NCBI GenBank assembly: GCA_964035545.1
Contig: OZ037768.1
Coordinates: 24,275,319 to 24,339,318 of the forward strand
Length of the DNA: 64,000 nt
DNA from: Bugula neritina
Lineage: Eukaryota; Animalia; Bryozoa
Direction: 5' to 3'
Under the pieces are notes generated by a model, which saw only the letters and a program-made list of their open reading frames with translations, had not been told where the DNA came from and did not search any database. Both the position numbers and the translations under genes were made by a program. Below, piece by piece: positions 237-63,057 of the stretch (position 1 is its first letter; every line of letters begins with the position of its first letter).

Positions 237-3200
237 GTTGATCACGGGAGTTGGTGAGTTTGACTTGAAGGAAGGAGTCAACTCGGGGAGTGAGAAGTCG
301 CCTCCCCCCAACTTCACTCAGCCCGACCCGAACTTAGAGGAGACACCTTTCCTTCTGCTGGACGTGAGAGATGCGGATGAATACAACTTGTGTCACATCA
401 TATCAGGTAGTATGTCACATCATATCAGGTAATGTGTCACATCATATCAGGTAGTGTGTCACATCATATCAGGTAGTGTGTCACATCATATCAGGTAATG
501 TGTCACATCATATCAGGTAATGTGTCACATCATATCAGGTAATGTGTCACATCATATCAGGTAGTGTGTCACATCATATCAGGTAGTGTGTCACATCATA
601 TCAGGTAGTATGTCACATCATATCAGGTAATGTGTCACATCATATCAGGTAGTGTGTCACATCATATCAGGTAGTATGTCACATCATATCAGGTAATGTG
701 TCACATCATATCAGGTAATGTGTCACATCATATCAGGTAGTGTGTCACATCATATCAGGTAGTATGTCACATCATATCAGGTAGTGTGTCACATCATATC
801 AGGTAATGTGTCACATCATATCAGGTAATGTGTCACATCATATCAGGTAATGTGTCACATCACAGCAGGTAGTGTGTCACATCATATCAGGTAGTGTGTC
901 ACATCATATCAGGTAGTGTGTCACATCATATCAGGTAATGTGTCACATCATATCAGGTAATGTGTCACATCATATCAGGTAATGTGTCACATCACAGCAG
1001 GTAGTGTGTCACATCATATCAGGTAGTGTGTCACATATTATATGCTTTGTTATTTGTATATCTTTGTCTAATGTGTTTATTTTTTATACAGCGGAAAACT
1101 TTCCAGTTTCTTTACTGTCAAGGAGCTGTAACTATGAGAGCAAGTCAATGTTGGCCTATGTAAGTATTATACACTGCAGTGTAAGTATTGTACACTGTAG
1201 TGTAAGTATTGTACACTGTAGTGTAAGTATTGTACACTGTAGTATAAGTATTGTACACTGTAGTGTAAGTATTGTACCTTGTAGTGTATGTAAGTATCAT
1301 ACAATACATATTGTAATGTGCTACTTAGACATATACTTATGATTATAGAGCATATACTTATCAAGTATCATTGCTTTGCTGAATTTCTCATTGGATAAAT
1401 CTTCAGCTGTGAGAGTTATCTATTTGTGTTAGTTATGACAACTCCCAGTGCTCATTGTACTAAATACATGACATAGTAACACATGTCACTGTGTCATAGT
1501 GTCACATGTCATAGTGACACATGTCACTGTGTCATAGTGTCACTGTGTGTCATAGTGTCACTGTGTGTCATAGTGCCACTGTGTGTCATAGTGCCACTGT
1601 GTGTCATAGTGTCACTGTGTGTCATAGTGTCACTGTGTCATAGTGTCACTGTGTGTCATAGTGCCACATGATATGGTAACGCAGAGCTGTTATCTGTTTT
1701 ATAGAAGAATCAGCCTGGCAAGATTATCATACTCTACGATGAAGATGAGCGGGTGGCCCCGAAAGCTGCCACAACACTTGTGGAACGAGGCTATGACAAC
1801 TTGTTTCTACTATCTGGTGGTACGTCTCATCTCTGATGGGATACTTCGTTTATAGTAGATGCAGTGTTTCATTGTAACTCATAATTAACACATTTCGCAA
1901 TCACAAATATTTTGATACAATCTTGGAATGAATATGCAACCTTGTCTTCTTTCTTGACTTGAAAAAGCTGTAATAAAATACTGATTATAGATGTATTTAA
2001 GCTGCTAGTCTTGGGTGTGAATATTTGTCATGTCTCTCCCCCTTGCCACTGGCCAACAGTTGCATAACATTGGAGTTGTGATCTCATGTGAATGCCACAG
2101 TGTATTACTATTATATCACCACAGTGTGATGTTGTGTTGCTATGGTTACCAGGTCTAAAGGTCGCAGGTAAACTATACTCTGTTGGGCTAGTTACCGGGA
2201 CTATACCTGCTAGCATTCTGCCCTCTAACAAGGGGCAGCCAGTGGTACCTCCCAGCAAGCAGCTCTTCACCAGGGAGGACATGTTTGCCCTGCTCGACCA
2301 ATCAGAAAGCTCGTACGATACAAAGAGTACAGTAGCTAGTAAGTGTCCTTAGCAACAGGGAGTTGTGTTCTCACAAATATAGCTCTCTGTATATTATACT
2401 AACATTAGCCAGACAGTAAAGGAAGTAGTGGCAGCTCTAGATAGAGAGAGGGGGGGTTACACAATGCCCTGAACAGTGTGTATTTAGATGTACTGCACCT
2501 TATCTCACAGTCTTGCTGTGTCAATTATTATTCTTTTCTGACATTGTGAGAAAGATGGAAAATATGGGAAACTTTTAAACATAATTAATATTCTTGAAAG
2601 AGGAATGCAAGCTTGTTAAGCTAATGAAGACATTTTCTTGCGTAACTCTAACAATATTATAGAATAAGGAATAATAGTAACTGTATTATATTGGAAGGAC
2701 TAAACACAGTGAATAGCGGTGAAGCCAATTCAGCCAAACAACTCAGACTACTGCTTTCATTTCAATCAATAAAATCTTACCTTAAGCTTGTTATTGTGGC
2801 TTCTGGGCAGGGAGGTTTAATTCATGTCCATGTACAAGGTGCAACATCTGTTTTCATATTAGCTGTGATGTAATCTCTTTCTCCCAATGAAAGTAAACAT
2901 CTGTCCTCTACATCTGCCAACTCATTAAATTTATTAGTGTCTAAAAATGGACTTTCAGCCACTTCCTTATTGTAAACAGTTGGTAATCTATTACCTAATA
3001 TCTCACTGTTTTTTAAAATTGTTTTAAGTATTTCTTAATGTTTTGCTTGAATTTATTTCAACAAGTTGGAAAATCTAATTTTGAGACTAGAATAACCTTC
3101 ACCTTGTCATAACCTTGACCTTGTCATCTGCTTGTGTAGGACAGGGCAAAGTACCTGCTATGACAAGTTTGAGCAAGTGTCTGTCACTACTGTGACATCA

Positions 3201-3553: not shown

Positions 3554-3599
3554 TTCACAGTACACAAGTTGACCTGCTGCATTACTTACTTCTGGTTGT

Positions 3600-9943: not shown

Positions 9944-12900
9944 ATGGATAGCGAAGAAGAAATGTATGATGAATCTGAAGAGGAGGAGGTTAGTGATGAT
10001 GATCATAATATGGTTATGGAACCTGAAGTTAGCAGTACTACGGCCACTTACGATAGCCAGGATGAAACCTATCCACACGAAGTCCTCTCACCTGAAATGA
10101 TTGTTCAACATATGATTGACTGTATTAAAGACGTCAATACTATTGTAGAGGTATTACTATTATTTTTGCATATTGTTTTTAATAGGACTTATATCTCATC
10201 TATGATAATCATAGTGAGTAACTTAAATTTTGTTGTTGGAACTTGGTTCAACTCCAAGTTCAAGCTGAGATCTTGATTTTAGTAGTTACAACAACTGAAC
10301 ACGTTAATTCACCTCTAATATCAAGTTATAGACTGGAATTCATTATAATAAAGTGATTTTATGTTGCTATTTTAGTTTACATTTATTGTTGATTAAAAAT
10401 AATTATTATTTAAGAAGTCCTACATTTTAAAGGCTGTTTTAACAATGCTTGCAGTCAGTGCGAGTGTCACTATGAGATGACCATCGAAATCGATTTCGAT
10501 ATCGTACTAATACTAATATAGATGCACTCCCTTACTCTTAGCTATATTTTTCACAAGAGATGAAAGTGATTAAAACATTATTGACTGGTTACAATTAATT
10601 AAAAGTAATATTTTCATTTTGTTGTATGAATTTTATTAGAAATCCAGATTGGTAATCCCCCACTCTCTATTCAATTCAATGGCAAACTTAATTTGCAATG
10701 CAAACTATTTACAATTAATAAACAAATACACATTCAATTCACTGTTGATAGATTTTAATGAATATAACCAGAATGTAATGAATGCTAAGTGTATGAAGCT
10801 CTAAGCTTCTATAGTTTGAGCTTATTATGTTGCATTCTGTTGCTAACAACACCAGGCTAAACCCCAGTTCAGATTATAAAAGTTGGTGTTTTTAATAGAA
10901 ACATTTATGTTCTGTTTTGGACTAAACTTTTTATTCATAGATTTCAAATCTCTCAGCGCCAAAGTTGAGATTTATGTATTAGTTGAGAGTTGAGGAGTGA
11001 ACAACCCTCAGACTAGTCAGTTATTAGATCTGATTGTGTGCTGCAGTTACCCGCCACAATCACTAGGATTCTACTCAACCATTTCAAGTGGGACAAGGAG
11101 AAGCTGATAGAGAAGTACTATGATGGTGACCAGGAGAAGCTGTTTGCTGAAGCTCATATCATAAGTCCTTCTAGAAGGGGCCAAGCTTCTGGTTAGTCTA
11201 ATCAGTATTTTGTTTTATTCTGATCTTTCAGAGGTGTTCACTACTAGAGCTATTGTCTTCCTTGCAACGAATGGCTTTAGTAGAATTCACTGTACCTAAA
11301 CTGCTTTACCTTGATAAGAATTAAGCAAGTATTCTTTGTTCTAAATTATTAGCCATCATGTTGATGTACAAGGCTGCAGTAGGTAGAAGATATTCTGACA
11401 CATAGCATTTCACACAGCAGTTTTCATTGCTGTGGTGAATATCTGTGGCTACTTTCAGGCTCCTCCAATCAAGTGTCGGTCTCCTCAACAACTCGAAGTA
11501 CCAGAAGCAGAGCCGCTGCCACAGTCAGGTCCGCTGACTGTGAAATATGTTTCTCAACGCTGCCGACCACGGTAAGCAGGGAACACTACTCACTCACACT
11601 ACTCATTAACTACTCACTCAATACTCACTCACTCAGTCTCATTCATTACTCAGTCACTCACTCTCTAATCACTCACTACTATAACTTATACTCTTATGTT
11701 TAAGTACATTACACAGTATAGCACATGGTTGATATATGATATTAGTCATCATATTGTTTAACATTATCACTGCACTGCACTATGTTATGAAGGTAATGAC
11801 AGGCTTAGAATGTGGACATCTCTTCTGTGAACAATGTTGGAGCATGTACCTCACCAGCAAGATATTACACGAGGGGATCAGTGAGACCATTTCCTGTCCG
11901 GCGCACGTGTGCGGCATATTGGTGGACGACGCCACCGTCATGTAAGTTCCACTCGCGATCTAATACGAGTAGCTTGCTATCAGTAGAATATGTGCTTTAA
12001 AAAGTTGTTCTCAAATGCATGAAATGGAATTGCTGTTGATGATGTAACTGATTGTTTTACACTTTTCTATTGGCTAAATCAATAAATCAATAGTATTGTA
12101 AGCATCATTATAAAGATAGCTGCAAACTAATTGCATTTAGATTTATACTCTCCAGATCATGTTGTGATTATGTATGAATATACGACACAAATTGTCTGCT
12201 CTTTGTTTTAGGAGGCTGGTTAGAGACCAAAGAGTAAGACTGAAATATCAACATTTAATCACAAACAGTTTTGTAGAGGTAAGTGTTGAAAGTGATTCCT
12301 CTTTTTTCCACGCAATGAAATATGCTGTTATTGCTGTATGATCAACTTTTATAAGAATATGATAGTAAACTTGGAGTTATCTCCTTGTTTGGGTTAAATT
12401 TTGGAATTGTTTCCTCTCTCACAACTGTTGTACATGTATTATTTGTGATAAAGACAACTAGCACATAATGGTTTCTTATAGTAGATGTTTTAGATAACAG
12501 ATATAATAGATAATAAATTATTTAAATAATATACTTTGAGTTCATCATTTTGAAGATTGACCGTAATATATTAATACTTGAATATTTCATTTAGTTTTCA
12601 CCATTTATTCATAAAAACTTTAAAAACCAAATTATAAAGGTTCTGATTTATATTATGTTTGTTATCAAGAGTGACATTTTAAACTGTAATACACTGTAGT
12701 ACACACTACTGTAAAGTGTTTGCTGTAGTTACACATGTTTGCTGTAGTTACACATGTTTACTGTAGCTACACATGTTTGCTGTAGCTACACATGTTTACT
12801 GTAGTTACACATGTTTACTGTAGTGTAACAGACTACTACGCTGGTGTCCTGCTGCCGACTGTGGTAGAGCTATCAGAGTCAACTACGTGGACAGTAAACC

Positions 12901-15900
12901 AGTTACCTGCACCTGTGGACATCGATTCTGGTCAGTGTCTGCTTGTAATACATCTGCTAGTTATACGTATGCTAGTTATACGTCTGCTAGTTATACGTCT
13001 GCTAGTTATACGTCTGCTAGTTATACGTCTGCTAGTTATACGTCTGCTAGTAATACGTCTGCTAGTTATACGTCTGCTAGTTATACGTCTGCTAGTTATA
13101 CGTCTGCTAGTTATACGTCTGCTAGTTATACGTCTGCTAGTTATAAGTCTGCTAGTTATACGTCTGCTAGTTATACGTCTGCTAGTTATACGTCTGCTAG
13201 TTATAAGTCTGCTAGTTATACGTCTGCTAGTTATACGTCTGCTTGTAATACGTCTGCTAGTTATACGTCTGCTAGTTATACGTCTGCTAGTTATACGTCT
13301 GCTAGTTATAAGTCTGCTAGTTATACGTCTGCTAGTTATACGTCTGCTAGTTATACGTCTGCTAGTTATAAGTCTGCTAGTTATACGTCTGCTAGTTATA
13401 CGTCTGCTTGTAATACGTCTGCTAGTTATACGTCTGCTAGTTATACGTCTGCTAGTTATAAGTCTGCTAGTTATACGTCTGCTAGTTATACGTCTGCTAG
13501 TTATACGTCTGCTAGTTATACGTCTGCTGAATATACATCTGCTAGTTATACGTCTTTATTTACTATATAGTATATACTTACTATATAGTATATACTTACT
13601 ATATAGTATATACTTACATATTTGTAGCTTTAGCTGTGCCGAGTCTTGGCACGACCCTGTCAAGTGTTTCTGGTTGAAGAAGTGGGTTAAAAAATGTGAT
13701 GATGACAGCGAGACTTCTAATTGGATAGCTGCTAACACTAAGGTATTTGATTGGATAGCTGCTAGCAACAAGGTATTTGATTGGATAGCTGCTAACACTA
13801 AGGTATTTGATTGGACAGCTGCTAACACTAAGGTATTTGATTGGATAGTTACTAACAACAAGGTATTTGATTGGATAGCTACTAACAACAAGGTATTTGA
13901 TTGGTAGGAATGCCCCAAGTGTCAGGTGACCATAGAGAAAGATGGCGGATGTAATCACATGATCTGTAGAAATCAGAGCTGTAAAGCTGACTTCTGCTGG
14001 GTGTGTCTGGGTCCATGGGAACCACACGGTTCATCATGGTGCGTATATATAGTATATATTATACAGGTATATTATATATATCACGCAGGTATATTATATA
14101 TCACGCAGGTATATTATATATATATTACGCAGGTATAGTATATATTACACAGGTATATTATATATATTACACAGGTATATATTATATATCACGCAGGTAT
14201 ATTAAATATCACGCAGGTATAGTATATATCACGCAGGTATATTATATATCACGCAGGTATAGTATATATCACGCAGGTATATTATATATCACGCAGGTAT
14301 AGTATATATCACGCAGGTATATTATATATCACGCAGGTATAGTATATATCACGCAGGTATATTATATATCAGTAGTTTTAAAAAACTACCAAAATCCTTT
14401 TCAAATTCTAGAAAACTGTATATTATTAAATAAAAGACCTATAAATTACTCTAACAGCATAACTTTTCTAGGTGTACAAATAGATAAAAATTTAAATTGG
14501 AGCTTGCACATCTCAAACCTACTTACAAAATTACGACCACTTAGTGGATTAATATACCGATGTTCTGAATATCTCCCTCAAAAAATTTTACTTTTGATAT
14601 ATAATTCTTTCATCAATTCCAAGTTAAATTATTGTGCAGAGGCCTGGGGAAATGCAGCTAATACCCATCTAAACAAGATTTTTATTTTTCAAAAAAAGGT
14701 AATGCGTATCATGAACAAAAAACCGTTTGACCATCCATCAGCGCCTCTATTTACTAAGCATAAAGTTCTCTCAATATACCAGATTTACCGTTTTAAAGTG
14801 TTAAAGAAAGCTCATTCTTTTTTCTACTCTGACAATTTTTTTCCCACTCACTCTATCAATACACGTCAATCATTCATAAATCTCCCCCTTCCTCACTCTC
14901 AAACAGCAGCAGGTCACAGAAGAAACTGTTATCAGGAGGTGGCACTATGGAATGAACTGCCAATCCCTTTACGGTCAATTAGCAACCCTAATGAATTTGG
15001 GAGGAAGTTGAGGCTTTATCTGTTAGAATAGTTGTATTTTTTTTGTATTTTTCTGGATAGAGTCGCTGTCAGCTCGTGTTGGCCCGCGCATGACTAGCTA
15101 GGCTATAGCGCAATGGGCCTCATCATCGCCTCCTTGGCATTTTCTAATGTCCTTGTGTTATTAAATACCTTTGATGAAATAAACCAAACAAACAAACAAA
15201 CAAACAAACAAACATATCACGCAGGTATAGTATATATCACGCAGGTATAGTATATATCACGCAGGTATATTATATATCACGCAGGTATAGTATATATCAC
15301 GCAGGTATAGTATATATCACGCAGGTATAGTATATATCACGCAGGTATAGTATATATTACGCAGGTATATTATATATCACGCAGGTATAGTATATATCAC
15401 GCAGGTATATTATATATCACGCAGGTATATTATATATCACGCAGGTATATTATATATCACGCAGGTATATTATATATCACGCAGGTATAGTATATATCAC
15501 GCAGGTATAGTATATATTACGCAGGTATATTATATATCACGCAGGTATATTATATATCACGCAGGTATATTAAATATCACGCAGGTATATTATATATCAC
15601 GCAGGTATATTATATATCACGCAGGTATATTATATATCACGCAGGTATATTATATATCACGCAGGTATATTAAATATCACGCAGGTATATTATATATCAC
15701 GCAGGTATATTATATATCACGCAGGTATAACTGTAACCGGTTCGATGAAGACGCTGCCGTCAAAGCTCGGACAGCACAGGAAGTGTCGAGGGCCGCACTA
15801 CAGCGCTACCTCCACTACTGTAACCGATACATGAATCACATGCAGAGTCTCAAGTTTGAACACAAGGTTTGTCTCCCCTTCCTCTCCAACCCTCGGGTTT

Positions 15901-17585: not shown

Positions 17586-18066
17586 TACTAAATATATAAT
17601 TGTAATTCTATTCAGGAGAATTAAACCTCTGTAACAAGTCGGGTGCTTAATTTGAGGTTCTAAAGTCGTACGTGACCTCCTAACCTTAAATTCTGCACTC
17701 CAGTCATTAATAAATAACTATATGTAGCTATTGGTAACAATATATACTCAATATGTATTGTTATCAGTATAATAAACTCAATATCAATTCTTGTATGAAC
17801 CGCAATGGCTCATCTGGTGATGAGCATTCTCACTGCTTTCAAAGAGTAGTAAAAACCTCTCCAAGTTTGCCAAGAAATCCCATCTCTGTTTGGAACTGGA
17901 ACGTTTTTGGGATACCAGATTCCATTGAGATGTGAGAGGTGACATTTACGGTACCACCAGCCACCTAAAACAATGACATTGATCCCTGAGTCCCTGGTTA
18001 CTGTGATGTGACTTATCAACCTGTAGGTAGATAATCTTAGCCCAGATCTGCAGTTACACTAGCTAG

Positions 18067-18540: not shown

Positions 18541-18919
<379 letters not shown>

Positions 18920-24092: not shown

Positions 24093-24108
24093 TGAACCAA
24101 ACAACATC

Positions 24109-38312: not shown

Positions 38313-38347
38313 TTAAAGGCTTTAGTTTACACCTGCTCAAATTAAAA

Positions 38348-44494
<6,147 letters not shown>

Positions 44495-47127: not shown

Positions 47128-50100
47128 TTATTCCGACACGGCGATCGGTCCCCGACAGCACCCCTTCCTAAGAATCAGTACAGCAACGAGTCCTATTGGC
47201 CCTTTGGATGGGGAGAATTGACCAATGTGAGTACTGTGGTGATGACTCCCAGAGAGAAGGCAACTTCTGATTTTCATAACCGAGTGATTATAATATACTA
47301 ATTGTTACAGAGATTTCGTATAGAAGGCCAAAAACTACTTAACACATTTTAGCAGACTTGAAATCTATAGTCTATTTGTATTTAGATTTAATAAATTGGC
47401 AGAAAATGGTGTTTTGTTGGATGCTGTTTAAACTGAAATGCACGTTACATTTTAGTCGTAGTATTCAACTGCTATATCGACGTGTACTGCATGTTTGTAG
47501 ACCGGGCGGGAGCAACAGTACAGACTCGGTCTCTTTCTAAGGCAGAGATACGACTCAGTGATTGACGATGTCTTCAACTATAAAAATGTTGGTATTATTT
47601 GCTGCAGCCTTGTTATCATTGATCTCTATTTTGTGTTATTGTGGCCAAACAAAGCAGCGTATAACTGAATATAACTCGACTTTGTTACCAGATAGAAGTT
47701 CGCAGCTCCGACAAGGACAGGTGTTTAGTCAGTGCCTACAGCAACCTGGCCGGCCTCTTCTCCAGCAACAACTCCGAGACGGAAGACCTGAAACTGCCGT
47801 GGATGACATGGCAGCCACTTCCTGTTCACACGCAGCCGGCCATCACTGACGAGGTTTGTGTGCCGCACCTGGTATACTGTGTCACTGTGTGCAGGTACTG
47901 TATTACTGTGTGCAGATACTGTATTACTGTGTGCAGACACTGTATTACTGTGTGCAGACACTGTATTACTGTGTGCAGATACTGTATTACTGTGTGCAGA
48001 TACTGTATTACTGTGTGCAGATACTGTATTACTGTGTGCAGACACTGTATTACTGTGTGCAGACACTGTATTACTGTGTGCAGGCACTGTATTACTGTGT
48101 GCAGACACTGTATTACTGTGTGCAGATAGTGTATTACTGTGTGCAGATAGTGTATTACTGTGTGCAGATACTGTATTACTGTGTGCAGACACTGTATTAC
48201 TGTGTGCAGACACTGTATTACTGTGTGCAGATACTGTATTACTGTGTGCAGATACTGTATTACTGTGTGCAGATACTGTATTACTGTGTGCAGACACTGT
48301 ATTACTGTGTGCAGATACTGTATTACTGTGTGCAGATACTGTATTACTGTGTGCAGACACTGTATTACTGTCTGCAGACACTGTGTTACTGTGTGCAGAT
48401 ACTGTGTTACTGTGTGCAGACACTGTGTTACTGTGTGCAGACACTGTGTTACTGTGTGCAGACACTGTATTACTGAGTGCAGATACTGTAGTACTGTGTG
48501 CAGACACTGTATTACTGTGTGCAGATACTGTATTACTGTGTGCAGACACTGTATTACTGTGTGCAGACACTGTATTACTGTGTGCAGATACTATATTACT
48601 CTGTGCAGATACTGTATTACTGTGTGCAGATACTGTATTACTGTGTGCAGATACTGTATTACTGTGTGCAGATACTGGCCATGGATAGACCGTGTACTCT
48701 GGGAGAGAAAGAGCTGGAGCGGGTATTCTCCACCCCCACTATACAACAGATAAACTCAGACTATGCGGAGTTCTTTAACCTGGTGGGTAACAATACTGGC
48801 GTGGATCTCTCCGAGAATGGTTTCAGAGATATCTGGACAGTAGCGGACTTCATGTACATCCAGGTGAGTCATGTGACATCCTGTGGTAGGTGATGAAGTA
48901 ATATTCTGTACTATGCTATAATAATATAATGTTCCTCCTATCTCTGCATAGGGAATATACTATCCCCCGCTACCAGACTGGACTACTGAAGGAAACATAA
49001 AGTGTAACGACAACCCAACCATCTCATGCAAAGACAAGACGGTGTACGAGATAATGAGAGAAATGAATGACTTACAGTTCTACGTTATGTACAACTCAAC
49101 CGAGCTGCACAAACTTGACGGGGGTATATGATATATCCTCATCTAGTATATGATATACCCTCATCTAGTATATGATATATCCTCATCTAGTATATGATAT
49201 ACCCTCATCTAGTATATGATATATCCTCATCTAGTATGTGATATATCCTCATCTAGTATATGATATATCCTCATCTAGTATATGATATACCCTCATCTAG
49301 TATATGATATACCCTCATCTAGTATATGATATATCCTCATCTAGTATATGATATATCCTCATCTAGTATATGATATTCCCTCATCTAGTATATGATATAT
49401 TCTCATCTAGTATATGATATACCCTCATCTAGTATATGATATACCCTCATCTAGTATATGATATATCCTCATCTAGTATATGATATACCCTCATCTAGTA
49501 TATGATATATTCTCATCTAGTATATGATATATCCTCATCTAGTATATGATATACCCTCATCTAGTATATAATATATCATATCCTTATCCAGGTCCAGTTT
49601 TGACGGATATCGGGAAGAAGTTTGGAGAGTATTTGGCAGGAAAAAGATCCGTCACGTACAACATTTACTCGGCGGTGAGTTTTCAGTATCCTTAGACTCT
49701 AACTGACTTGGCAATCTGTATACTCTACTCTGTATACTCTGTATACTCTACTCTGTATACTCTACTCTGTATACTCTGTATACTCTGTATACTATACTCT
49801 GTATACTCTACTCTGTATACTCTACTCTGTATACTCTGTATACTCTACTCTGTATACTCTACTCTGTATACTCTGTATACTCTACTCTGTATACTCTGTA
49901 TACTCTACTCTGTATACTCTACTCTGTATACTCTGTATACTCTACTCTGTATACTCTGTATACTCTACTCTGTATACTCTACTCTGTATACTCTACTCTG
50001 TATACTCTACTCTGTATACTCTACTCTGTATACTCTACTCTGTATACTCTACTCTGTATACTCTACTCTGTATACTCTGTATACTCTACCTGTATACTAT

Positions 50101-51424
50101 ACTGTATACTATACTGTATACTATATGAATATATCATCTACCATGTATCATACATAATACTGTCATCCCACACCATTGCCTTTCTCACGAGATTCACTCA
50201 TCTGTACGTCAACCTTTCAAACCGTTTTGAGACAGCAGGTTGTGTCAGACCAGGTAACTAGAAACATGTCAACTATTATATAAACTCATTGCTGACTTTC
50301 TTGTGACTATTGCAATTGCTGACTCTACGTTATATTTAGCACGACACGACAGTGTCTGCCGTTCTCACCGCCCTCCAGATCTCGGACGCTAAGCAGCCAA
50401 AGTACACCGCCACGGTCATGGTTGAGCTGCACAAGTCAGCTGGTGATGCTCAAGGTCACGAGGTCAAGGTCTTTTACAAGCCAATCACTGACAGCTCTTT
50501 TATTGTGGAGAAAAATCTGCCAGGTGAGAGAGTTTAGTCTGCGGCGTGAGTGAGTAGGTGTGTAGTGATACGCCGTGAGAAGGTGTGTAGTGATACGTCG
50601 TGAGAAGGTGTGTAGTGATACGCCGTGAGAAGGTGTGTAGTGATACAGTGTGAGAAGGTGTGTAGTGATACGCCGTGAGAAGGTGTGTAGTGATACAGTG
50701 TGAGAAGATGTGTAGTGATACGCCGTGAGAAGGTGTGTAGTGATACGCCGTGAGAAGGTGTGTAGTGATACAGTGTGAGAAGGTGTGTAGTGATACATTG
50801 TGAGAAGGTGTGTAGTGATACAGTGTGAGAAGATGAATCATTAGTATTTTGTGTTTCAGGTTGCCCAAGTCCTTGTAAACTTGAAGACTTCCTACAATAT
50901 GTCAAGAGATTTGAAATTTCTAACTGGGACGAGGAGTGTGGGAATAATGTGCCGACAACTCCGGCTCCACCATCCACAGACAGCCTCGGTCTCACTCACC
51001 GTACGTCTGCTACTTGTATATACGTCTGCTACTTGTATATACGTCTGCTACTTGTATATACGTCTGCTACTTGTATATACGTCTGCTACTTGTATATACG
51101 TCTGCTACTTGTATATACGTCTGCTACTTGTATATACGTCTGCTACTTGTATATACGTCTGCTACTTGTATATACGTCTGCTACTTGTATATACGTCTGC
51201 TACTTGTATATACGTCTGCTACTTGTATGTACGTCTGCTACTTGTATATACGTCTGCTACTTGTGTATACGTCTGCTACTTGTATATTTACAGAGGAGAA
51301 GATAACAATCATCGCCTGCTCCACCGTAGTCGTGGTATTCTGCCTCATTCTACTGATTATGTTTGTGAGAAAAAGGAGCTCTAGGTCTATGGCACCGTAC
51401 CTGTCCCTTGGCGTTGGTGAGTAG
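47128..51424 (+). CDS. Lysosomal-type histidine acid phosphatase (ACP2/ACPP-like), type I membrane; first exon(s) unresolved
   Basis: Exons 47128-47226, 47501-47587, 47692-47853, 48672-48863, 48952-49123, 49592-49674, 50340-50523, 50860-51000, 51294-51424. RHGDRSP catalytic motif, WPFGWGELTN, RSSDKDRCLVSA, WQPLPVHT, YSA|HDTT; C-terminal TM + RKR + YLSL (YxxPhi sorting-like). Confidence 0.9.
47875..48677 (+). repeat. 21-bp acceptor-spanning minisatellite (~38 copies)
   Basis: TATTACTGTGTGCAG|AYACTG; last AG 48671 followed by exon ATACTGGCC. Confidence 0.96.
49124..49591 (+). repeat. 22-bp minisatellite forming an entire phosphatase intron (~21 copies)
   Basis: GTATATGATATAYCCTCATCTA starts at donor 49124; acceptor ATATCCTTATCCAG resembles a degenerate unit end. 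Confidence 0.93.
49716..50122 (+). repeat. CTCTGTATA/CTCTA compound repeat
   Basis: Intronic low-complexity array. Confidence 0.9.
50546..50833 (+). repeat. 25-bp intronic minisatellite (~11 copies)
   Basis: GTGAGAAGGTGTGTAGTGATACRSY; unit start GTGAGA matches the donor GTGAGAG at 50524. Confidence 0.9.
51002..51287 (+). repeat. 19-bp minisatellite filling the last phosphatase intron (~15 copies)
   Basis: TACGTCTGCTACTTGTATA begins at +2 of donor GTACGT (51001) and ends ~6 nt before acceptor 51293. Confidence 0.93.
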
Positions 51425-52420: not shown

Positions 52421-55400
52421 ATGAATATTGACGAATTGCAGGATACAAATCTGATTAATGGCCGGGCAGCAATTTTCAAGGTACATTTTATTTGTTTATG
52501 CTTATTTGATAACTGAAAGTTTAGGAAAAACTGGTTTTTGAGATTTCAAGCTGCACAAGTACAAAAACTATTTGCAACTATGAGTCACTGTCGGGATTTA
52601 GTCACATGATCTTAAATTTGGCAAATTATTTACCTTTTTTTGCAGGAAAACCTGTGTAATTATTTTGAATTCGTTAGATTTGAAACTGTTAAATGGAAGA
52701 CGATGTTTGGTTAACGTTAAATCCAAACTTTTGTCACTAAATTTTGGAATTTCTAGTTAATGTTAAATATAAACTTTTTGTCACTTGATTCATTCATGTG
52801 TGTTCTTAGATGTTACGATAACTCCTACTGTTTTCGTAGAACTTGCTGATTACCAAGTTCCGGCTAGTTGAGAAAATTGGTAGCAAAGTGGTGTTTAGTA
52901 AAGAAACATGTGCCGAGCTTGTAGAGGTCAAAGGACTCATGGATGAGCTTATGACTAACAGTCCAGATGCCAAAGTATGCAATTCCTGCAGGGTTCTACC
53001 AATTCTTTCTATTTTTATGAGCTTTATTCTTTTTTCTTTATAGATCCTATTGTTTGGAGTTTTTGAGAACAAAATGTTGTATTCAAGCTGCCGTGATTTT
53101 ATGTTGTTAGCCATATAATGTCTTAGTCATGGTCATCTTCGTATAAGTATGTTGGAGGGTTCTTATTAATATGGCATTTCCTGTTGGAATATATTTACTG
53201 TTTTTAAATTATTTATTTTTAAGCACTTTGCAAAACCAAAGTATATATAATACTGGGAAGATTATTGAATGGGTTGCTGTATCTGATTGCTTTATTATAT
53301 TATAATGTCACATTTGATTGGTTGAAAATAATCTAATGCTACATCTGATTGGGTGATTGAATCTATTGACTCACAGGTGAAGTATTCGCTGAAGAGAGTC
53401 AAGAACCGCACGGTGAAGCCAAAGTCAGTGCGTGGTTGGCTGAAGGATCAGAACAGAACTATGAATCTGTTCACTGTCATCACATACCCGATACTCCGGT
53501 GGGTAAGATGGCTTCTCCACAGCAACCTCTTCCATCGCTTCTTCTACCTTGTTGCTCTCTGGAATATGGCTTCAGTCGGTAAAGTCGATAATCTCATTTC
53601 ATTGTCTTGCAAGTGTTTTATTATTTGCTGTGGTTGTGTTATTTGACAAATTGGTAATGCAGTTATTTGTACCGGTAATGTGATAATTCATATGCGTAAT
53701 GTGGTAATTCATATTGATAATATGATAATGGAAATTAGTAATGTGGTTAATCATATTGGCAATGTGATAGTTTGTTTTAAAACTTTTGGGAGTCTACAAT
53801 AAGTTAGGATGGTTTTAACTTTTAATGAGTTTAGGGTATATCATAGTAATACTTTATAAGCAGACGCATGTCTGTACTACAGAGTAAAATACAATAAGAG
53901 TAATGTAGGAGTACTAATCAGTGTACTATTGGCAGCACTAGACATAGAATATGGACAGACTGGGCTTATGGCTGGCACTGATACATTCACGGTGCCTGTA
54001 ACTAGTAAAGCAATTAAGGTCAACCTAGCCATTGCCCAAATCACGCTGACTATCCTGCTGCTGCTCGAACTTGCCATGAAGTGGATCTTGGATTTCCAGG
54101 TACGTCTCTCTCTTTGCTTAGTATTTATGTCACTTTGAATATTGTGTGATTGTCATGTACTATGAGTCACTGAATATTGTGTGATTGTCATATACTGTGA
54201 GCTATTCTGTGAATTATAACTTGCTGTAGGGATACTGGAGAAGGTTCTGGAATTACGTTGACTTCTTTGTTGTCATATCTACTGCACCATTTAGTAAGTA
54301 TTATCATATCTACTGCACCATTTAGTAAGTATTATCATATCTACTTCACCACTCAGTACGTAACAAGATATATACTGTAAGTCTCTCTCTCTGTTTGCAG
54401 TTGGCACATTCTTTGAGTGGTATGAGTTAGACTTTGTGGGGGAGATCACGCTGCACGCCTGTAGAAGTTTGATTGCCCTGAAGCTTATTCACGAACTCGA
54501 TGCTCTCAAAGCTGTGTTGGAGTTGCTAGCCCTCACTGTAGCCAGCATGGTGCGACAACTTCTATGTTTATTTCAAGTTCTTCTAAGTTTTCTTTTCAAA
54601 ATTTATAATATGTACATCATATTTTGCTACAGGCTGTTTCCCAGTCTATGTTTAACATTTCCTGTTCTGATGGCGCTTGTAGGTGTACGTTGTCAGTTTC
54701 ATCGTGATGCTGACCTTCCTGTGTGGTCTGATAGGTACGACCCTCTTTGATGTTCACGTCATCCCTCCTTCTCAGGCCGGCCTCAATCTCAATGAAGTGA
54801 AGGAGTGGGAGGCTGCCTATGTCTTCAGTCATGGTTCGTTCGTATGTTTGTGTGTCTGTCTGCATGTCTGTTTGTCTAACTCTGATTCAGAATGACTGAG
54901 TTCTTGATTATGTTTTAATTTAGTTGCTTTATTGTATGGTTTGTTTGCTACGAGTCATAATAATAAATATACTAAAATAAACTAGAATATACAAGAATAT
55001 ACTAGAATAGACTAGAACATACTAGAATATCCTAGAACATACTAGAATATTAGAACATACTAGAATGTACTAGAATATACTAGAACATATTAGAACATAC
55101 TAGAATATACTAGAATTTCAACTGATTATGATGTTCCTCTCAGGCCTAGGAAGATCTCTGCTCATAATATTCAAACTCTTCACTCTGGACGGTTGGTACA
55201 AGTTCTACAAAGACTTTGCCCTGATCCACGACATCTATGCTTCTTCTATTTTCATCTTCACTTGGGTCTTCCTCTCTGCGTTCCTCCTCGGCAATCTCTT
55301 CCCTGCTCTACTCATTACCAACTTTCAGCGAATCAGAAGTGAGGTTAGTAAATGGGTAAAGTTACAGCTGCTTAGATGTCGCATTCTTCAGCACACATTC

Positions 55401-58400
55401 TCTAAAAACTGAAGTCTATGATTTTACAGTATTTGATAAGTTGGTGCAGCTAAACCCCCTAGACACCCCCTATGACACCTCATTGGGTATTTATGTTCAA
55501 CGAGTTGACGCGAATCTCTTCCCGTTCAATAGGAGCCTGGCGCAATTTTTTTAATCAAGCAGTGCTTGATCCTGACATACCGTAACGTAGCACGGTCAGC
55601 CCCGCCACGTTTAAAATTGGCTGACATTTGCTGTTACGGTCTACGTTACGGCAAAGTATGTCTGGGGAGAAAAGCTATATACTATTAACTGCTACTGCTC
55701 CACTTGAGAGCTAAAAGCACTCAATTCTGAGAGATTATCTCCTTTGCAGTTGAAAGAAGAGATGGAGCACTCAGAGATTGTGAGAGAGATGAGTCAGGAG
55801 ATTCTGCTGTTGGGAGATCAGATGCAGAACAACAGGATTCCTCTGGCAACAAATGTATCTAATGAGTCAACTGGTGAGTCATAGCTTGTCTGGTGATGAG
55901 TCATAAGTTATCTGACCAGTCATAGTACATGTGGTAATGAGTCATAGTGTATGTGGTGATGAGTCATAGTATATGTGATAATGAGTCATAGTGTATGTGA
56001 TAATGAGTCATAGTACATGTGGTAATGAGTCATAGTGTATGTGGTGATGAGTCATAGTATATGTGATAATGAGTCATAGTGTATGTGATAATGAGTCATA
56101 GTATATGTAATAATGAGTCATAGTGTATGTGATAATGAGTCATAGTATATGTGGTAATGAGTCATAGTGTATGTGGTGATGAGTCATAGTATATGTGATA
56201 ATGAGTCATAGTGTATGTGATAATGAGTCATAGTATATGTGGTAATGAGTCATAATACATGTGATAATGAGTCATGATAATTTATTTGATATGCATGGAA
56301 TTTCTAACTATTATCCTCTGCTATATTATACTGTAGAAGCTTCTAGTTTCAGACTGTATCAGCACTGCATTATGTTTTATATACAGTTTTGATTTACAGT
56401 CACTGATAAGATTGGCGTTGATGTGGTACTCAAAGCAACTTCCTACTCTGAGACTAGCATACACACAGTTGATATTAGTGAAGCCTTCCTTGATAAACTC
56501 TACGCACACCCCACTCTACCTGTATGTATAGCTAGCTCCTCCCACCCTACCTGTATGTATAGCTAGCTCCTCCCACTTTACATGTATGTATAGCTAGCTC
56601 CTTCCACTCTATCTGTATGTATAGCTAGCCCCTCCAACTCTACCTGTATGTATAGCTAGCTTCTCCCACTCTACCTGTAGGTATAGCTAGCTCCTCCCAC
56701 TCTACCTGTATGTATAGCTAGCTCCTCCCACTCCACCTGTATGTATAGCTAGCTTCTCCCACTCTACCTGTACGTATAGCTAGCTCCTCCCACTCTAGCT
56801 GTATGTATAGTTAGCTCCTCCCACTCTTTCTGTATGCATAGATAGCTCCTCCCACTTTACGTGTACGTATAGATTTAATTAACATCCTCATTACAGGGAG
56901 AAATGCACTCTGATACATATGGACTAAAGTCTAGCAAGTCTGAGATATATGGTAAGCATTATGTTGTATATATTGGTATTTTAGTTTCACTGCCATCCTT
57001 AGAGATATTATACTATACATATATATCTATTATCTCTGGATAATTGTATCTTTATCCTATACAGTACTGTGCATTTCTAGCCATCCACCTGAGTTGTTTA
57101 TCTTGTATCCTAGCAACCACACCCATAGTAGCCGTCCAATCAGCTACTCCTCCCACCCAATCACCAAAGTCTTCCCTCGCATCAGAATCTGGAGCCACAC
57201 CTACTCAAGAAGTCTTTTCAAGAGCCACGTCTGCAGCTGCCAAGGGCACATCCACACCCACTAAAGACACGCCCACTGGTTCTCTAACCACACCCCCACT
57301 TCCTCCAAGAGCTTCTTTTGCCTCCGCCCCGAAAGAGAAACTTTTTCTGTCTCAGCTTGACCTCGCCAGTCTGATGAGGATAATGCCGTCAGAGTTGGAG
57401 CCCGGCAGACCTATGACGGCGGTGAGTGATGACCTCCGTGCTGCCTAGCAATTAGCTGGCTGGCCCTTCGTGGGAACTTTACCCCCTACGGGTTACCTTG
57501 TGTGTACTACGCTACTCTCTAGTTACAGTAAGCTACAGGTGAGTTAATTTAGATGTTGACTGGTGTTTAGGTTCATGACTCAAGGGCTGTGGAAGGTGCC
57601 AGAACTAGCAAGACTGAACATGAGAAGGTGGCTAAGCATCGTGGATCTAAACCTCTCAGTGCGAAGGGCAGTCTCAAAGGGTCGTCGGCAGTCAACATGG
57701 GTGTGTATTCTGGTACTCAGTCTATGTCTGGTGTGTATTCTGGTATTCAGTCTATGTCTGGTGTGTATTCTGTGATTGGATTATTTGTAGAACTACTTGC
57801 AGTGTTAAAAGTAAAAAGCATTACTTTATTGTGATGAAGTGAATGTCTATGAAACAAAAACAACCTTTTGTAGTTAATTGTTAAGCTGTTTTGTCAGTTT
57901 TGTGATGTTTTTAGATCTGCCAAAATCATATTCAAATAAATAATTGTAGCCCAGATTCCTAGTTTAGCTTCTGATAGTTCCTCTACCATCCCCGCTGATC
58001 ACATCAATGACAGAGAAAAAGTTCATGGTAGGTTTTCATGCCAGCATTCTGTTTTAGTAATACTTACTGTCATATACTCTGACTCATTGTTATAGTGCAG
58101 ACTATCATATACTCTGACTCATTGTTATAGTGCAGACTATCATATACTCTGACTCATTATTGCAGTGCAGACTATCATATACTCTGACTCATTGTTGTAG
58201 TGCAGACTATCATATACTCTGACTCATTGTTGTAGTGCAGACTATCATATACTCTGACTCATTGTTATAGTGCAGACTGTCATATACTCTGACTCATTGT
58301 TATAGTACACACTATCATATACTCTGACTCATTGTTGTAGTACACACTATCATATACTCTGACTCATTATTGCAGTGCAGACTATCATATGCTCTGACTC

Positions 58401-61400
58401 ATTGTTGTAGTACAGACTATCATATACTCTGACTCATTGTTGTAGTACAGACTATCATATACTCTGACTCATTGTTGCAGTGCAGACTATATTGACGCTA
58501 GCAACTCATACAAATGCAGTGCTCAAGGAATTTGCAGGTCTCCACGTTCTGCCCAGGTGAGTCGTGCGAATGCCAGGAACCGTCTCAGGTAATAACTGGA
58601 CTCACTATAACTCTTTGTTTATTTCGTGTTCGATCAGACATTAAACAGGATGAGTTTGGTTTTCATTAGCCTGATTTCCGTCTTTTGTGGGGTTAATCAA
58701 TCTAAGGTAACTGATGCTGCTAAACATGTAGCCTTGTTCCTTGATGATGGCATAATTAATATATAATGATGCGGGAAAGTTTGCTCCACGGACTGCCTCT
58801 TCTGCATGTATTATATTATACTTGTTCTGTAGACGAAACCTGACTGTTAATGCCTCCAAACAAGAGAGAAAAATGTCCTTCCCAAGCAGGTGCGTGTGAA
58901 CTCTGGTCAGAGTGTGGCAAGGGACTTGTGATGTAATTTCCTGTAAGATAACAGAATTTACTGTATGATGCATATCTGCTGTCAGATGTGCATCACTACA
59001 CTCTAGAATGTTCTCTCGTTGCTTCAGGACTGCCTACTCTCTTAAAATCCCGTCAAAGATGAGTCGTAAAAGTAGTCAGTTACGGAAAGATTTCCGGGAG
59101 TTGTTTGCGCTATCGCAAGGCGCCAGCGGGGCTGTGAGTGGCAGCACCGGCAGTGGCGGATCTAAGCACGGGACACACGCCAGCGTCACCAGAAGAAGCA
59201 CTCGGGTTACCAATGACGGGTTACCTCTCATCAGTGAGTCAGATACTCCCAGCTTGGTATATGAAAGTACATCGAATAGACTGGGGTCTCTTGTTACTCA
59301 GAACAACACGGAACGGGGGCTGGAAGAGTACTATGAGTGAGTTGCAAATAATTCATTTTATAAACTCTTACTATTTGATTTTTAACTATTAATTGAAAAT
59401 ATTTGTATATTGCACTTGATTAGAAGTTCTCTAAAAGAGTAATCTGTCTGTTTGTCCACTGCATACGGTGAACTACTGTGTCTACCTTCAGTGTGGCCAG
59501 CAACATCATCCTCGATATTCCCTTCCAGTCCGCCAAAAATAGCTTAGGTTCTGAGGGTCCAGACACCAACAACAATGCGACCGAAGAGAGCGGGGAGCCA
59601 GGAGATTTCGGAGATACTGGAGAGGTGGGTGAGGAGGAACAACTGGATAGAAATAATAATGCTAAGAAACACTCCGACGATAAAAGTCAAGGGTGAGTTT
59701 CCTTATGAGATGTAGAAGGGTAGCACTGAATAACAGGCAGTAGAGGGCAGCACTGAATAACAGGAAGTAGAAGGGTAGCACTGAATAACAGGAAGTAGAG
59801 GGCAGTACTGAATAACAGGAAGTAGAAGGGTACCACTGAATAACAGGAAGTAGAGGGCGGTACTGAGTTACAGGAAGTAGAGGGGTGGTACTGAATAACA
59901 GGAAGTAAAGGGGTGGTACTGAATAACAGGAAGTAGAGGGGCAGTACTGAATAACAGGAAGTAGGGAGGCGGTACTGAGTTACAGGAAGTAGAGGGGCGG
60001 TACTGAGTATATTATTAATTCTTTTTGTTATTTTGTTTTACTGTTGACCTCTAGAGTTCAGGAAGGCTCGAGCTCTCCAAGCACAACAACTCAGTCTTCC
60101 GTACCAAAGAGTGCCAAGCGGAACTCCCCACAGCAACGCCTCTCTGACCAGAAGTGTAAGTATGAGACTAGCTAATCATACAGAGTGTTATAATGTGTGC
60201 TGCCAGTTTTATACTTCTCTCTCATTGGCCTACAGTGCTGCCAGACAGTCAGCCAGCCAAAGAGGCTCAGCTCCTGTATACCAACAGCTTTCTCACCGGA
60301 CCAAACTCTCCCAACCAATCAGAGCTCTCCGATTCTACAATCATTCCCATCAGCGGACTCGCCGTCTCTAAGACCTGGTAAATGTCGTCTGCTGCCTTCT
60401 TTTTCCACTTAGCTGTGTGTGCTTTGTTAGTAGAGCTCAGTGTTAGTAGAGCTCAGTGTTAGTAGAGCTCAGTGTTAGTAGAGCTCAGTGTTAGTAGAGC
60501 TCAGTGTTAGACTGAGAGACTGAGATACTATTAGACTGAGATCGTACTGTTGGTTGTTAGGGGGTCGGAAAGGAGAGCCGAAAACAGCAGCCCATTTGCC
60601 AGCAAGTTAGCCAGTGTTCTACAGATGTTTAAAATGCTGTCTCCGGCAGCCACAAGAGGGAAGAGCAAACCTCGAGCCTCGCTGGAAGCCGAGAAGTGAG
60701 TCATTGTAATAAATTTAGCTCCTTGTATGATGCCGTTACGTATTAACTCTATAATATAGTTTATAGACTGTTGGCTGCTTAATTCTAGTAAAACATGATT
60801 CAGCTGCATTTATGCTGCAAGACACAATTTATCGGGAGATTTCATTAGAACTAATGCATAACGGGTTGATAATCAGCCTGTAGTATGCGCAGACTGAGAT
60901 TTATTTTTAGCAGGGAGTTGGTGAAATGAAAAGTAATCTATTAGTCTAATAGATTGGGGTAATTGTAATTTGTAATTGTAATTGGTTGTAATTAATTACA
61001 TTTTTTCAAGTAATTGAATGTAATTTGTAATTGATGTATAAAAATGTAATTGTAATTGTAATTAATTACATATTTAATGTAATTGATTTTTACAATTACT
61101 TTATAATTACATGTCAATTACTTCAAAATTTGAAATCCTAAAAGTTTCATACTTTTCCTACCATGCCTACTGTTAAATAACAAATTCAGATTAATTGTCA
61201 ATGTGGTATAGTATCACTGTTGAGTACAAAGGAGGTTCAGCACTGTCAAAATTGCCCCTGCTAGTTGGACCCTAGAAGTGAAATTGCATAACTTTTATTT
61301 ATCTCTTGCGAGAACAAAAATAATTGTAATTAATTACATTGCCATGTAATTGTAATTGTAATTAATTACATTACTATTTGACTGTAATTATAATTGTAAT

Positions 61401-63057
61401 TGTAATTGACAAATTATCATGTAATTGTAATTGTAATTAATTACATTCACATGTAATTGACCCCAACCCTGCTATTAGAGATATTTTATACTAGCAACTC
61501 AGTTAGGTAGAAAGATAAGGACGGAATATTCAGTCTGAGCTGAATTTTCCTAGGTTGTTCCAACCCTGGCGGTGAGATAACTCCGATAAATAGAAATTAG
61601 TTCTGAAAGTAGTATTCGGTCTGATATGATCATTTCTCACTTCGTTTTAGAGATGTGGAGATAAATCTGATTTCTGCCACACCACGAACTTCTCACCGAG
61701 TGAACTCTACATCTGGTAAGTTGAGTGGCATTGTAGCGGTACAGTGTGTAAGGAGTGGTATCATAGCTGTACAGTGTAAAATGTGTTATTATTTCCATTT
61801 CAGCCAACTATGAGAAATCTCTTCCAAGGAGTGCATTCGATGAAAGCCAACAGTTGTTTGTCCAGCGTGGAGCCAAGTCTAAACTCAGTATGATTGAGTC
61901 TTCTATGGGAAAGGAAGGAAAGAGCTTCAAAATCATGAGAACTCTGGGAAGAAAGTAAGTGTTACTATAAATAGACAGTGTTACTATAAATAGACAGTGT
62001 TACTATAAATAGACTGTGTGTATTATAAATAGACAGTGTATACTATAAATAGACAGTGTTACTATAAATAGACAGTGTATACTATAAATAGACAGTTTAT
62101 ACTATAAATAGACAGTGTGTACTATAAATAGACAGTGTGTACTATAAATAGACAGTGTGTACTATAAATAGACAGTTTATACTATAAATAGACAGTGTGT
62201 ACTATAAATGGACAATGTTTACTATAAATAGACAATGTGTACTATACATAGACAATGTTACTATAAATAGACCTAGTGTATACTATAAATAGAGAGTTAC
62301 TATGTGGTACTCCCTGTAAGTTGATATTGTGTGTGCAGGACCCAGGCTATGCCCAGCGAGTTTAATGTGGGGAGGAAACCTCTAGTCTCCAGCCGCACTT
62401 CTCTCAATAGTCTTAGGAAAGCCTTTCTCCACAGGAAGCACGTGAGTAGATGTGAACTATTAAACTCTGCTGCGTTATTTATTTACTGAATTTGACAAAT
62501 TTAAGAACATTTTATTCTTACATAACTTCATAGTAATTTAGACTCACTATTTTGTGGGATTTCTACTCAGGTTTGGTTGGTATCTTTTCATTCAATTTTT
62601 TACTTTTAGTATTCCGATCACATCTTGCAAAGACAATGGCTGATGCAAGAAATCAGACGGGTTTTACTGGAACACGAACAAAGAGCAAACAAGTGGAATG
62701 AGACAGTAAATAATTGTCACTTGGCCATCCACACACTGGAGGTGAGAAGATTAGATATGTTTTGACATGTGCTCAAGGTGAGCCAGGTGCTGACATGTGC
62801 TTTTTCCAAGTGTCAGGAGAGGCCACCCAGTGTGTCACTTGTAATGTTTTACAAGCCTATAGTGTCGCCTGTCATGTATTGCTGACACGTCGTGGCAGGT
62901 GGAGACTGAGTGGACTGACATTGTGCTACTCAACTACTTGTACACTCTGACAGAGCTGATGGAGAATATGATGGAGAGAGAGCACTTGCTATCACTTGTC
63001 TCACAGTGCCTCCTCTCCTTCAATGATGACATCTGTGTTGACAAGTCTGACAGAACA
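52421..63057 (+). CDS. CATSPER2: Cation channel sperm-associated protein 2-like (6TM, CatSper alpha subunit); probably continues beyond 63057
   Basis: Exons 52421-52480, 52840-52974, 53377-53578, 53909-54099, 54230-54293, 54401-54549, 54683-54833, 55144-55343, 55750-55873, many Ser-rich exons, then ~62899-63057. N-terminal RAAIFKNLLITKFRLVE, S2 LLELAMKW, S3 FWNYVDFFVV, pore FKLFTLDGWY, S6 FIFTWVFLSAFLLGNLFPALLITNFQRIR, C-terminal W..LLNYLYTLTELMENMMERE..L, all resembling CATSPER2 as recalled. Tail exons are less certain. Confidence 0.8.
54273..54360 (+). repeat. 31-bp exon/donor-spanning repeat (~3 copies)
   Basis: TCATATCTACTGCACCATTTA|GTAAGTATTA; true donor 54294. Confidence 0.85.
54980..55116. 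repeat. 10-bp repeat
   Basis: ACTAGAAYAT units. Confidence 0.8.
55455..55667. mobile_element. Diverged, internally deleted relative of the 21439 MITE family
   Basis: Shares CAATAGGAGCC, TTTTTTAATCAAGCASTGCTTGATC and TTTGCTGTTACGG with the MITE right arm; ends CCCCCTAGACA / TGTCTGGGG. Confidence 0.65.
55874..56277 (+). repeat. ~22-bp minisatellite derived from a donor region
   Basis: TRATGAGTCATAGTRTATGTGR units share TGAGTCATAG with the donor GTGAGTCATAG (55874). Confidence 0.88.
56510..56872. repeat. ~30-bp intronic minisatellite
   Basis: CTCCTCCCACTCTACCTGTATGTATAGCTAG. Confidence 0.9.
57701..57772 (+). repeat. 30-bp repeat starting at a donor (2.4 copies)
   Basis: G|GTGTGTATTCTGGTAYTCAGTCTATGTCTG. 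Confidence 0.8.
58068..58490 (+). repeat. 35-bp acceptor-spanning minisatellite (~12 copies)
   Basis: CATATACTCTGACTCATTGTTGTAGTGCAG|ACTAT; the last AG (58485) opens an open 72-nt exon ending at GTGAGT. Confidence 0.88.
59712..60008. repeat. ~28-bp intronic minisatellite
   Basis: GTAGAGGGCAGTACTGAATAACAGGAA variants beginning ~20 nt after a donor. Confidence 0.85.
60426..60510. repeat. 16-bp repeat
   Basis: GTTAGTAGAGCTCAGT x5. Confidence 0.85.
60954..61471. mobile_element. hAT-type MITE, longer member of the 18067 family, opposite orientation, left end damaged
   Basis: Right TIR ACCCCAACCCTG + flank CTATTAGA; left begins TTGGGGT; GTAATT subterminal repeats match the 18067 element. Confidence 0.85.
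61958..62300 (+). repeat. 19-21-bp minisatellite overlapping a donor
   Basis: AGTGTTACTATAAATAGAC units start within GTAAGT (61955). Confidence 0.88.

Follow-up and report, generated by a model that had tools for sequence, protein, structure and literature searches.

The subject of this analysis is a set of tandem repeats that lie across or close to splice junctions in 64,000 nucleotides of genomic DNA from the bryozoan Bugula neritina (hereafter the window), on C4 of the 216-Mb assembly GCA_964035545.1 (contig OZ037768.1, positions 24,275,319 to 24,339,318). Five genes on the plus strand carry the arrays: one that we take to be CEP41 and that contains a rhodanese domain, ARIH1, PLK1, a histidine acid phosphatase and an Ion_trans channel gene (52900-62450), presumably CatSper-like, whose C-terminal part is long, low in complexity and spread over many exons. 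Gene models were compared exon by exon and 52 introns were fixed by splice signals and phase, junctions in the C-terminal half of the channel gene being placed by reading-frame continuity only; a search of the PDB with one exon gave no match. An ARIH1 exon is 100% identical to the Bugula neritina protein, in agreement with the species. Arrays and their units were called with Tandem Repeats Finder, and copy numbers are as assembled.

Minisatellites at splice junctions in five genes

In the five genes, 29 of the 52 introns contain a total of 32 private minisatellites, and array DNA amounts to 22% of the window. The donor GT lies inside the repeated unit in 10 of the 32 arrays, six of which include 9-23 exonic nucleotides (nt) while four start at -1 or +1. 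Five arrays include the acceptor AG, with an exonic reach of at most 6 nt that may be microhomology only, and the other 17 are intronic arrays with neither junction inside the unit. Junction units are 18-45 nt long, array units are AT-rich (35% guanine plus cytosine, GC), and a true site together with its decoys can reach 39 donors or 40 acceptors in one array. In the list below, L021 is the corresponding locus in the independent assembly GCA_010799875.2 and L025 that in a metagenome contig.

389..1036, plus strand: CEP41 donor-spanning array, 22-mer, 29.5 copies, 18 exonic nt, donor 407, 29 sites; its intron (407-1091) collapses to 59 nt
1159..1292, plus strand: CEP41 donor array, 21-mer, 6.4 copies (34.4 in L021), start at -1 of donor 1160
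12717..12824, plus strand: ARIH1 acceptor array, 19-mer, 5.7 copies, end at acceptor 12823
12937..13555, plus strand: ARIH1 donor-proximal array, 15-mer, 41 copies, 6 nt behind donor 12931
13720..13904, plus strand: ARIH1 donor-spanning array, 30-mer, 6.2 copies, 23 exonic nt, donor 13743; these exon-derived copies form nearly all of an intron (13743-13907) of ancestral position
14048..15729, plus strand: ARIH1 acceptor array, 20-mer, about 41 copies, true acceptor 15724, 40 sites
15866..15925, plus strand: ARIH1 donor array, 30-mer, 2 copies (39-mer, 6.1 copies in L021), start at -1 of donor 15867
16733..16799, plus strand: ARIH1 acceptor array, 32-mer, 2.1 copies, end at acceptor 16799
40469..40986, plus strand: PLK1 intron-internal array, 20-mer, 26 copies; intron collapses to 65 nt
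41318..41496, plus strand: PLK1 donor-proximal array, 16-mer, 11 copies, 4 nt behind donor 41314
42394..43008, plus strand: PLK1 donor-spanning array, 45-mer, 13.7 copies, 16 exonic nt, donor 42410
43392..44131, plus strand: PLK1 donor-spanning array, 18-mer, 41 copies, 9 exonic nt, donor 43401, 39 sites, in frame and stop-free
47874..48677, plus strand: acid phosphatase acceptor array, 21-mer, 38 copies, true acceptor 48671, 38 sites
48862..48951, plus strand: acid phosphatase intron, counted here as array-free (about 1.6 decayed copies)
49124..49577, plus strand: acid phosphatase donor array, 22-mer, 20.6 copies, start exactly at the GT of 49124
51002..51287, plus strand: acid phosphatase array, 19-mer, 15 copies, start at +2, junction not repeated; intron collapses to 26 nt
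54273..54362, plus strand: channel gene donor-spanning array, 31-mer, 2.9 copies, 21 exonic nt, donor 54294
55918..56275, plus strand: channel gene array, 22-mer, 16 copies, decayed copies back to about +2 of donor 55874
56510..56872, plus strand: channel gene donor-spanning array, 31-mer, 11.7 copies, 12 exonic nt, donor 56522 (junction from frame only)
57700..57772, plus strand: channel gene donor array, 30-mer, 2.4 copies, start at -1 of donor 57701 (junction from frame only)
58066..58490, plus strand: channel gene acceptor array, 35-mer, 12 copies, acceptor 58485, 10 sites (junction from frame only)
61958..62297, plus strand: channel gene donor-proximal array, 20-mer, 17 copies, 3 nt behind donor 61955

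A first-pass annotation, made from the letters of the window, had named most of these arrays; all those that it listed are present with the unit lengths given, and its exons, phases and junctions hold. Its donor arrays at 407, 1160, 13743, 42410, 43401, 49124, 54294 and 57701 stand, the one at 51001 is withdrawn because its unit starts at +2 and the junction itself is not repeated, and those at 15867 and 56522 had been omitted. The five acceptor arrays (12823, 15724, 16799, 48671 and 58485) were correctly identified, as were others that begin near a junction, namely 12937 (6 nt), 41318 (4 nt), 61958 (3 nt) and 55874 (decayed copies to about +2). As a separate observation, an 842-nt insertion (14372-15213) with a (CAAA)n tail divides the ARIH1 20-mer array; it is absent from L021 and looks like a truncated retroelement.

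The arrays of CEP41 and ARIH1 recur in GCA_010799875.2 at different copy numbers, with 15.5, 34.4, 8.7, 4.2 and 6.1 copies there against 29.5, 6.4, 41.3, 6.2 and 2.0 in the window. In L025 the acid phosphatase acceptor array at 48671 is shorter, with 5.6 copies against 38 in the window, and its unique 5' flank is longer; in this same haplotype the intron at 48862..48951 has a 25-mer donor array of 9.6 copies starting at -2. The arrays are variable number tandem repeats (VNTRs) whose length is unstable between haplotypes.

Chance, composition and chromosomal position

Whether these arrays overlap junctions beyond chance depends on the null chosen. When seeds were placed randomly in each intron collapsed to one unit, 10 donor overlaps were seen for 7.5 expected (p=0.18) and six exon-deep donors for 5.9 expected. 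Acceptor overlap is not in excess under any null (p 0.09-0.65 with array-free intron lengths), and exon-deep acceptor units number 0 for 5.2 expected (p=0.002, collapsed null), so that exon-deep donors and acceptors stand at 6:0 (p=0.03). Polypyrimidine tracts at the array acceptors were not significantly weak. The first-pass annotation had also drawn attention to polarity, the first donor or last acceptor being the one at the exon and all copies being intronic; this description is accurate, and it is mere geometry that gives no evidence for a focused process, because every duplication that crosses a junction and is tolerated will have its first donor or last acceptor at the exon, with the copies lying on the intron side.

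Intron length and loss of flanking sequence bear on the same question. The collapsed length is below 80 nt for 15 of the 29 array introns versus none of the 23 array-free introns (p=2e-5). Loss of unique DNA is visible at two loci: the ARIH1 15-mer array, which lies 11 nt behind its donor in L021, has been brought to within 6 nt by a 5-nt deletion, and the phosphatase acceptor intron has 20 nt of unique 5' flank in the window, compared with about 52 nt in L025. Erosion of this kind offers an ordinary cause for arrays that start at -2 to +6 of a donor; the donor needs about 6 nt and the acceptor its branch point, so erosion would stop nearer the donor.

The composition of the units is distinctive, and it is similar whether or not they contain a junction. 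AA/TT is scarce and GTA/TAC words are abundant in junction and non-junction units alike, and their purine-pyrimidine alternation is 0.657 and 0.658, respectively, compared with about 0.52 for intron DNA. Alternation in the exonic parts of spanning units is 0.58 versus 0.44 at other exon ends (p=0.006), which suggests that seeds are picked by sequence and not by position only. This bias favors GTA-type donors and disfavors T-rich acceptors with no link to splicing required. Seeding at palindromes was also considered; perfect palindromes were not more frequent than in dinucleotide shuffles, and small hairpins were more frequent only marginally.

The proposal that the units do not form a family held in that there is no common unit, and a transposon or introner family was rejected because only words of 10-13 nt are common to them. 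It did not hold in full, since units of different loci have words of at least 10 nt in common in 12 pairs versus about 4 in shuffles (longest 13 nt), at least three times the level of both dinucleotide and second-order nulls. Possible causes of this sharing are a higher-order composition bias or ectopic templated copying. Units that share words include 12937 and 51002, 46857 and 47874, and 40469 and 49124; one pair is inverted and 1 kb apart.

Arrays of this type are regional features found at chromosome ends, not the pervasive genome feature that had been suggested. Array DNA makes up 1.7-2.3% of two 100-kb blocks in the middle of C1, or about 2%, versus 22% in the window, and of the C1 arrays that contain a donor word, 30 of 36 are in the first 2.7 or last 6.6 Mb (the distal 26%), with none at 8.6-21.2 Mb. 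The window itself probably lies near the end of C4. Among the few long arrays of the mid-C1 blocks is a 33-mer in 5 copies (L017:1511-1678) that apparently starts about 15 nt behind a putative minus-strand donor. In a second bryozoan, Watersipora, the phosphatase gene (introns of 0.4-4 kb) and its neighbor have long arrays in mid-intron, a small sample; a search for an ARIH1 locus in a second bryozoan found none.

We consider it probable that the Bugula arrays are what have been called 'mirage' minisatellites, products of ordinary VNTR birth and turnover in distal chromosome domains that were shaped by short introns, erosion and selection. According to this explanation, short local duplications would form within genes and grow through slippage or unequal exchange, with a preference for purine-pyrimidine-alternating, AA/TT-poor sequence; the composition and the change of copy number between haplotypes are observed, and the repair pathway is presumed. 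In introns of about 80-300 nt a seed of 15-45 nt would, by computation, often cross a junction. Selection would then purge exonic seeds and retain those which leave the exon-proximal site intact, and the count of exon-deep decoys (six at donors, none at acceptors) may reflect a greater tolerance at donors. Selection that tolerates only this geometry was one half of what the first-pass annotation had inferred, and it is the better supported half. Once an array provides length, adjoining unique intron DNA could be lost down to minimal signals, leaving the residual flanks of 0-6 nt at the donor and mostly 13-50 nt at the acceptor; besides the two deletions described above, some deletions may have passed the site to a GT or AG within the array.

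Several results weigh against this explanation. With array-free intron lengths as the null, 2.4-5.4 donor overlaps are expected for the 10 seen, an excess of 2-4 fold (p 9e-5 to 0.03) that persists when the null is weighted by composition. Collapsed lengths understate ancestral lengths, which makes the collapsed-intron null a generous one, and even under it arrays start at -2 to +6 of a donor in 8 cases for 3.0 expected (p=0.007). In addition, sites at which a triple with 16-38 nt spacing begins were counted genome-wide as a share of all sites of a word; by this measure two donor words, AGGTAAGT (1360 of 10571 sites, 12.9%) and AGGTGAGT (1385 of 11059, 12.5%), are in arrays 8-10 times more often than the one-base-dead control AGHTAAGT (393 of 25319, 1.55%) or the reversed control TGAGTGGA (70 of 5438, 1.3%). 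The sample for the junction statistics is also small, being one window and 32 arrays.

A rival explanation is that breaks or template switches prefer 5' splice sites, so that seeds truly start at the donor, for reasons that could include transcription pausing, R-loops, nucleosome edges or spliceosome-linked repair. Starts at -2 to +6 exceed expectation under every null (8 seen, 1-3 expected), the donor words stand above their controls, and the sole haplotype-specific expansion found, the one in L025, also starts at -2 of its donor. However, one-sided erosion plus selection predicts the same pile-up, and erosion is directly seen; acceptors show no excess; and there are few arrays in the mid-chromosome blocks. 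The word test is itself confounded by unit composition, because a non-donor anagram, AGTAGAGT, which is partly self-periodic, scores higher (3705 of 17568, 21%) than the donor word (13%), and its controls are genome-wide, not intron-matched. A reversed donor word (0.13%) was rejected as a control because it was too weak, and for TTTCAGG, a strong acceptor word, no more than 12 triples were counted. What the word test does establish is that there are hundreds of such loci; it does not show donors to be the target.

For these reasons we regard a donor-focused mutational origin as unlikely. The duplication process focused on junctions that the first-pass annotation had put forward is not demonstrated, given p=0.18 against the collapsed null, acceptors that are never enriched and a confounded word excess; an overlap test on the arrays of the window found an excess over array-free intron lengths and none over collapsed introns. 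Slightly more doubtful still is its strong form, a process in Bugula by which short tandem duplications originate at 5' splice sites beyond what geometry, erosion and composition produce, for example by splicing- or transcription-coupled breaks with templated repair, perhaps borrowing words from neighboring arrays. If true, it would link the spliceosome directly to the birth of repeats in the germ line, with hundreds of polymorphic loci as test material.

Site choice, intron age and array reality

Splicing was read from contigs of three RNA runs at two donor arrays. At the PLK1 45-mer array the first of 14 donors is used (joint 42409-43033), and at the PLK1 18-mer array RNA exits at 43400, the first of 39 donors, directly into the next exon; a further joint, 41313-41513, was seen at the PLK1 16-mer donor-proximal array. 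No alternative joint reached 5% at the two donor arrays in the contigs, which drop rare forms. These data bear out the prediction that the exon-proximal donor is chosen among the decoys. At acceptor arrays the last acceptor is probably the one used, as it restores protein junctions that are conserved in Lingula, Patella and mostly Tubulanus (ARIH1) or in Watersipora (phosphatase). In the explanation by VNTR turnover, the spliceosome takes the most upstream donor, as observed at the two arrays and in human F7, and presumably the last acceptor, probably by co-transcriptional first-come choice combined with exon definition.

The repeated sites could instead be functional decoys which tune splicing rate or expression or yield in-frame extended isoforms. 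The units at 13743, 43401, 48671 and 1160 can be read through in frame, and human CBS and 6-16 use some of their pseudo-sites (PMC1557585). However, no decoy joint reached 5% even for the 18-mer at 43401, whose decoy products would escape decay because its unit is in frame and stop-free. Copy numbers differ up to ten-fold between haplotypes, frame-keeping units are in no clear excess, and the arrays are not conserved in introns of Watersipora, Lingula, Patella or Tubulanus. A decoy function is therefore improbable, and the arrays are probably junk that the genes tolerate.

The comparison of orthologous introns that had been proposed was made for two genes. Codon and phase of the array-bearing ARIH1 introns match those of Lingula and Patella, and all but one match Tubulanus; the position of the intron ending at 12823, for example, is common to three other phyla. 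Array-bearing introns of the acid phosphatase match Watersipora positions. In both genes the sequence comparison indicates that the introns came first and that the arrays entered them later instead of giving rise to them. This bears on a model in which introns are gained by tandem duplication of a proto-splice site and the arrays would be new introns, as might be thought from the ARIH1 intron 13743-13907, which is almost wholly exon-derived copies, or from the 20-mer at 15724, every copy of which has an AG and then a GT. The shared positions refute it for ARIH1 and the phosphatase, and we give it scarcely any credence.

Least credible of all is an assembly artefact from long-read stutter or collapsed haplotypes, a concern raised by the regularity of the arrays and by two copies of a 6-kb tandem block with identical array sizes, and refuted as to presence by arrays of differing copy number in an independent assembly and a metagenome contig, by repeat words of the PLK1 arrays at 3-30 times flank depth in a DNA run, and by array pieces in RNA runs of another lineage.

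Some observations concern the data sets and the rest of the window. In RNA runs X1, X6 and X10 about 4-7% of exonic sites (40990-43560) disagree with the assembly, and DNA run X14 matches it; L021 and L025 are also divergent, which is consistent with cryptic B. neritina lineages. The public NCBI model of ARIH1 (L021:13496-13696, P0002) bypasses the true acceptor that follows the 20-mer array and lacks 22 conserved residues, an error which illustrates that junction arrays mislead annotation in practice. Many kinase matches with in-frame TAA/TAG on small assembly contigs, C206, C149, C174 and C66 among them, point to contaminant contigs with a ciliate code. At 19500-37400 a block of about 6.07 kb occurs three times in tandem; it has a multi-exon gene on the minus strand and fibrinogen-domain-like fragments. 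Two of the blocks have a 16-mer in 28 copies and a 32-mer in 7.1 copies, the third has the 16-mer in about 2 copies, and this is either a recent duplication or a partial misassembly. The 32-mer array of the block likewise begins only a few nt from a donor on the minus strand. A dispersed AT-rich element, similar to a miniature inverted-repeat transposable element, is found at 18061-18294 and 60948-61471; it contains TGTAAT/ATTACA repeats and has short inverted termini.

Relation to known junction repeats

The architecture described here was thought by the first-pass annotation to be undescribed, yet it is known both from amphioxus mirages (PMC3087553; PMC3902484) and from human repeats of the F7 and CBS type (PMC1557585). 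Mirages are tandem repeats across exon-intron boundaries in amphioxus Adh3 (units of 10-72 bp), the globins BflGb6 and BflGb9, troponin C and PGBD5; either boundary can carry them, their length is unstable and they leave splicing undisturbed (PMC3087553; PMC3902484). Every defining feature of mirages that was tested is found in Bugula. Units are locus-specific, span 5' and 3' boundaries and have sizes within the Adh3 range; lengths differ between haplotypes (29.5 versus 15.5, 6.4 versus 34.4, 41 versus 8.7 and 38 versus 5.6 copies); and regular splicing is kept, as judged from RNA at two donor arrays and from conserved junctions at acceptor arrays. The differences are that Bugula belongs to the Bryozoa, that its arrays are locally denser (15 at junctions among 52 introns, with copy numbers of up to about 40), and that some of its introns are almost wholly array, whereas the amphioxus cases were described gene by gene without a null model.

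Human VNTRs that span donors are known in F7 intervening sequence (IVS) 7 (37 bp), CBS IVS13, 6-16/IFI6, LMNB2 and PDGF, and in F7 minigenes the most upstream donor wins (PMC1557585); ABCA7 intron 18 is a human junction VNTR with some use of pseudo-sites (PMC13747324). The Bugula donor arrays resemble the F7 type both in layout, with a first unit across or next to the donor and identical pseudo-sites behind it, and in use, since splicing takes the donor that lies farthest upstream. They differ in that the human repeats are rare single loci, whereas Bugula units are AT-rich and acceptor arrays occur too, and, unlike CBS, 6-16 and ABCA7, no pseudo-site use was seen at 5%. Human VNTRs show a 7-fold enrichment in the 5 Mb next to chromosome ends (PMC7608644), and the arrays on C1 are likewise concentrated towards the ends; in contrast to the GC-rich human distal repeats, those of Bugula have 35% GC, alternate purines and pyrimidines and lie in very short introns. 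The model of intron gain from proto-splice sites is that of Rogers, as cited in PMC3087553; the Bugula duplications share its AG/GT content, but the introns examined are ancestral.

What is new relative to these systems is a second invertebrate phylum and the scale. A single donor word already accounts for roughly 150-300 loci whose length varies between colonies. These loci are natural material for studying how the spliceosome selects one site from as many as 40 identical ones, and whether an invertebrate with short introns keeps to first-donor choice. The asymmetry between donors and acceptors in exon-deep decoys (6 versus 0) is a testable signature of that choice.

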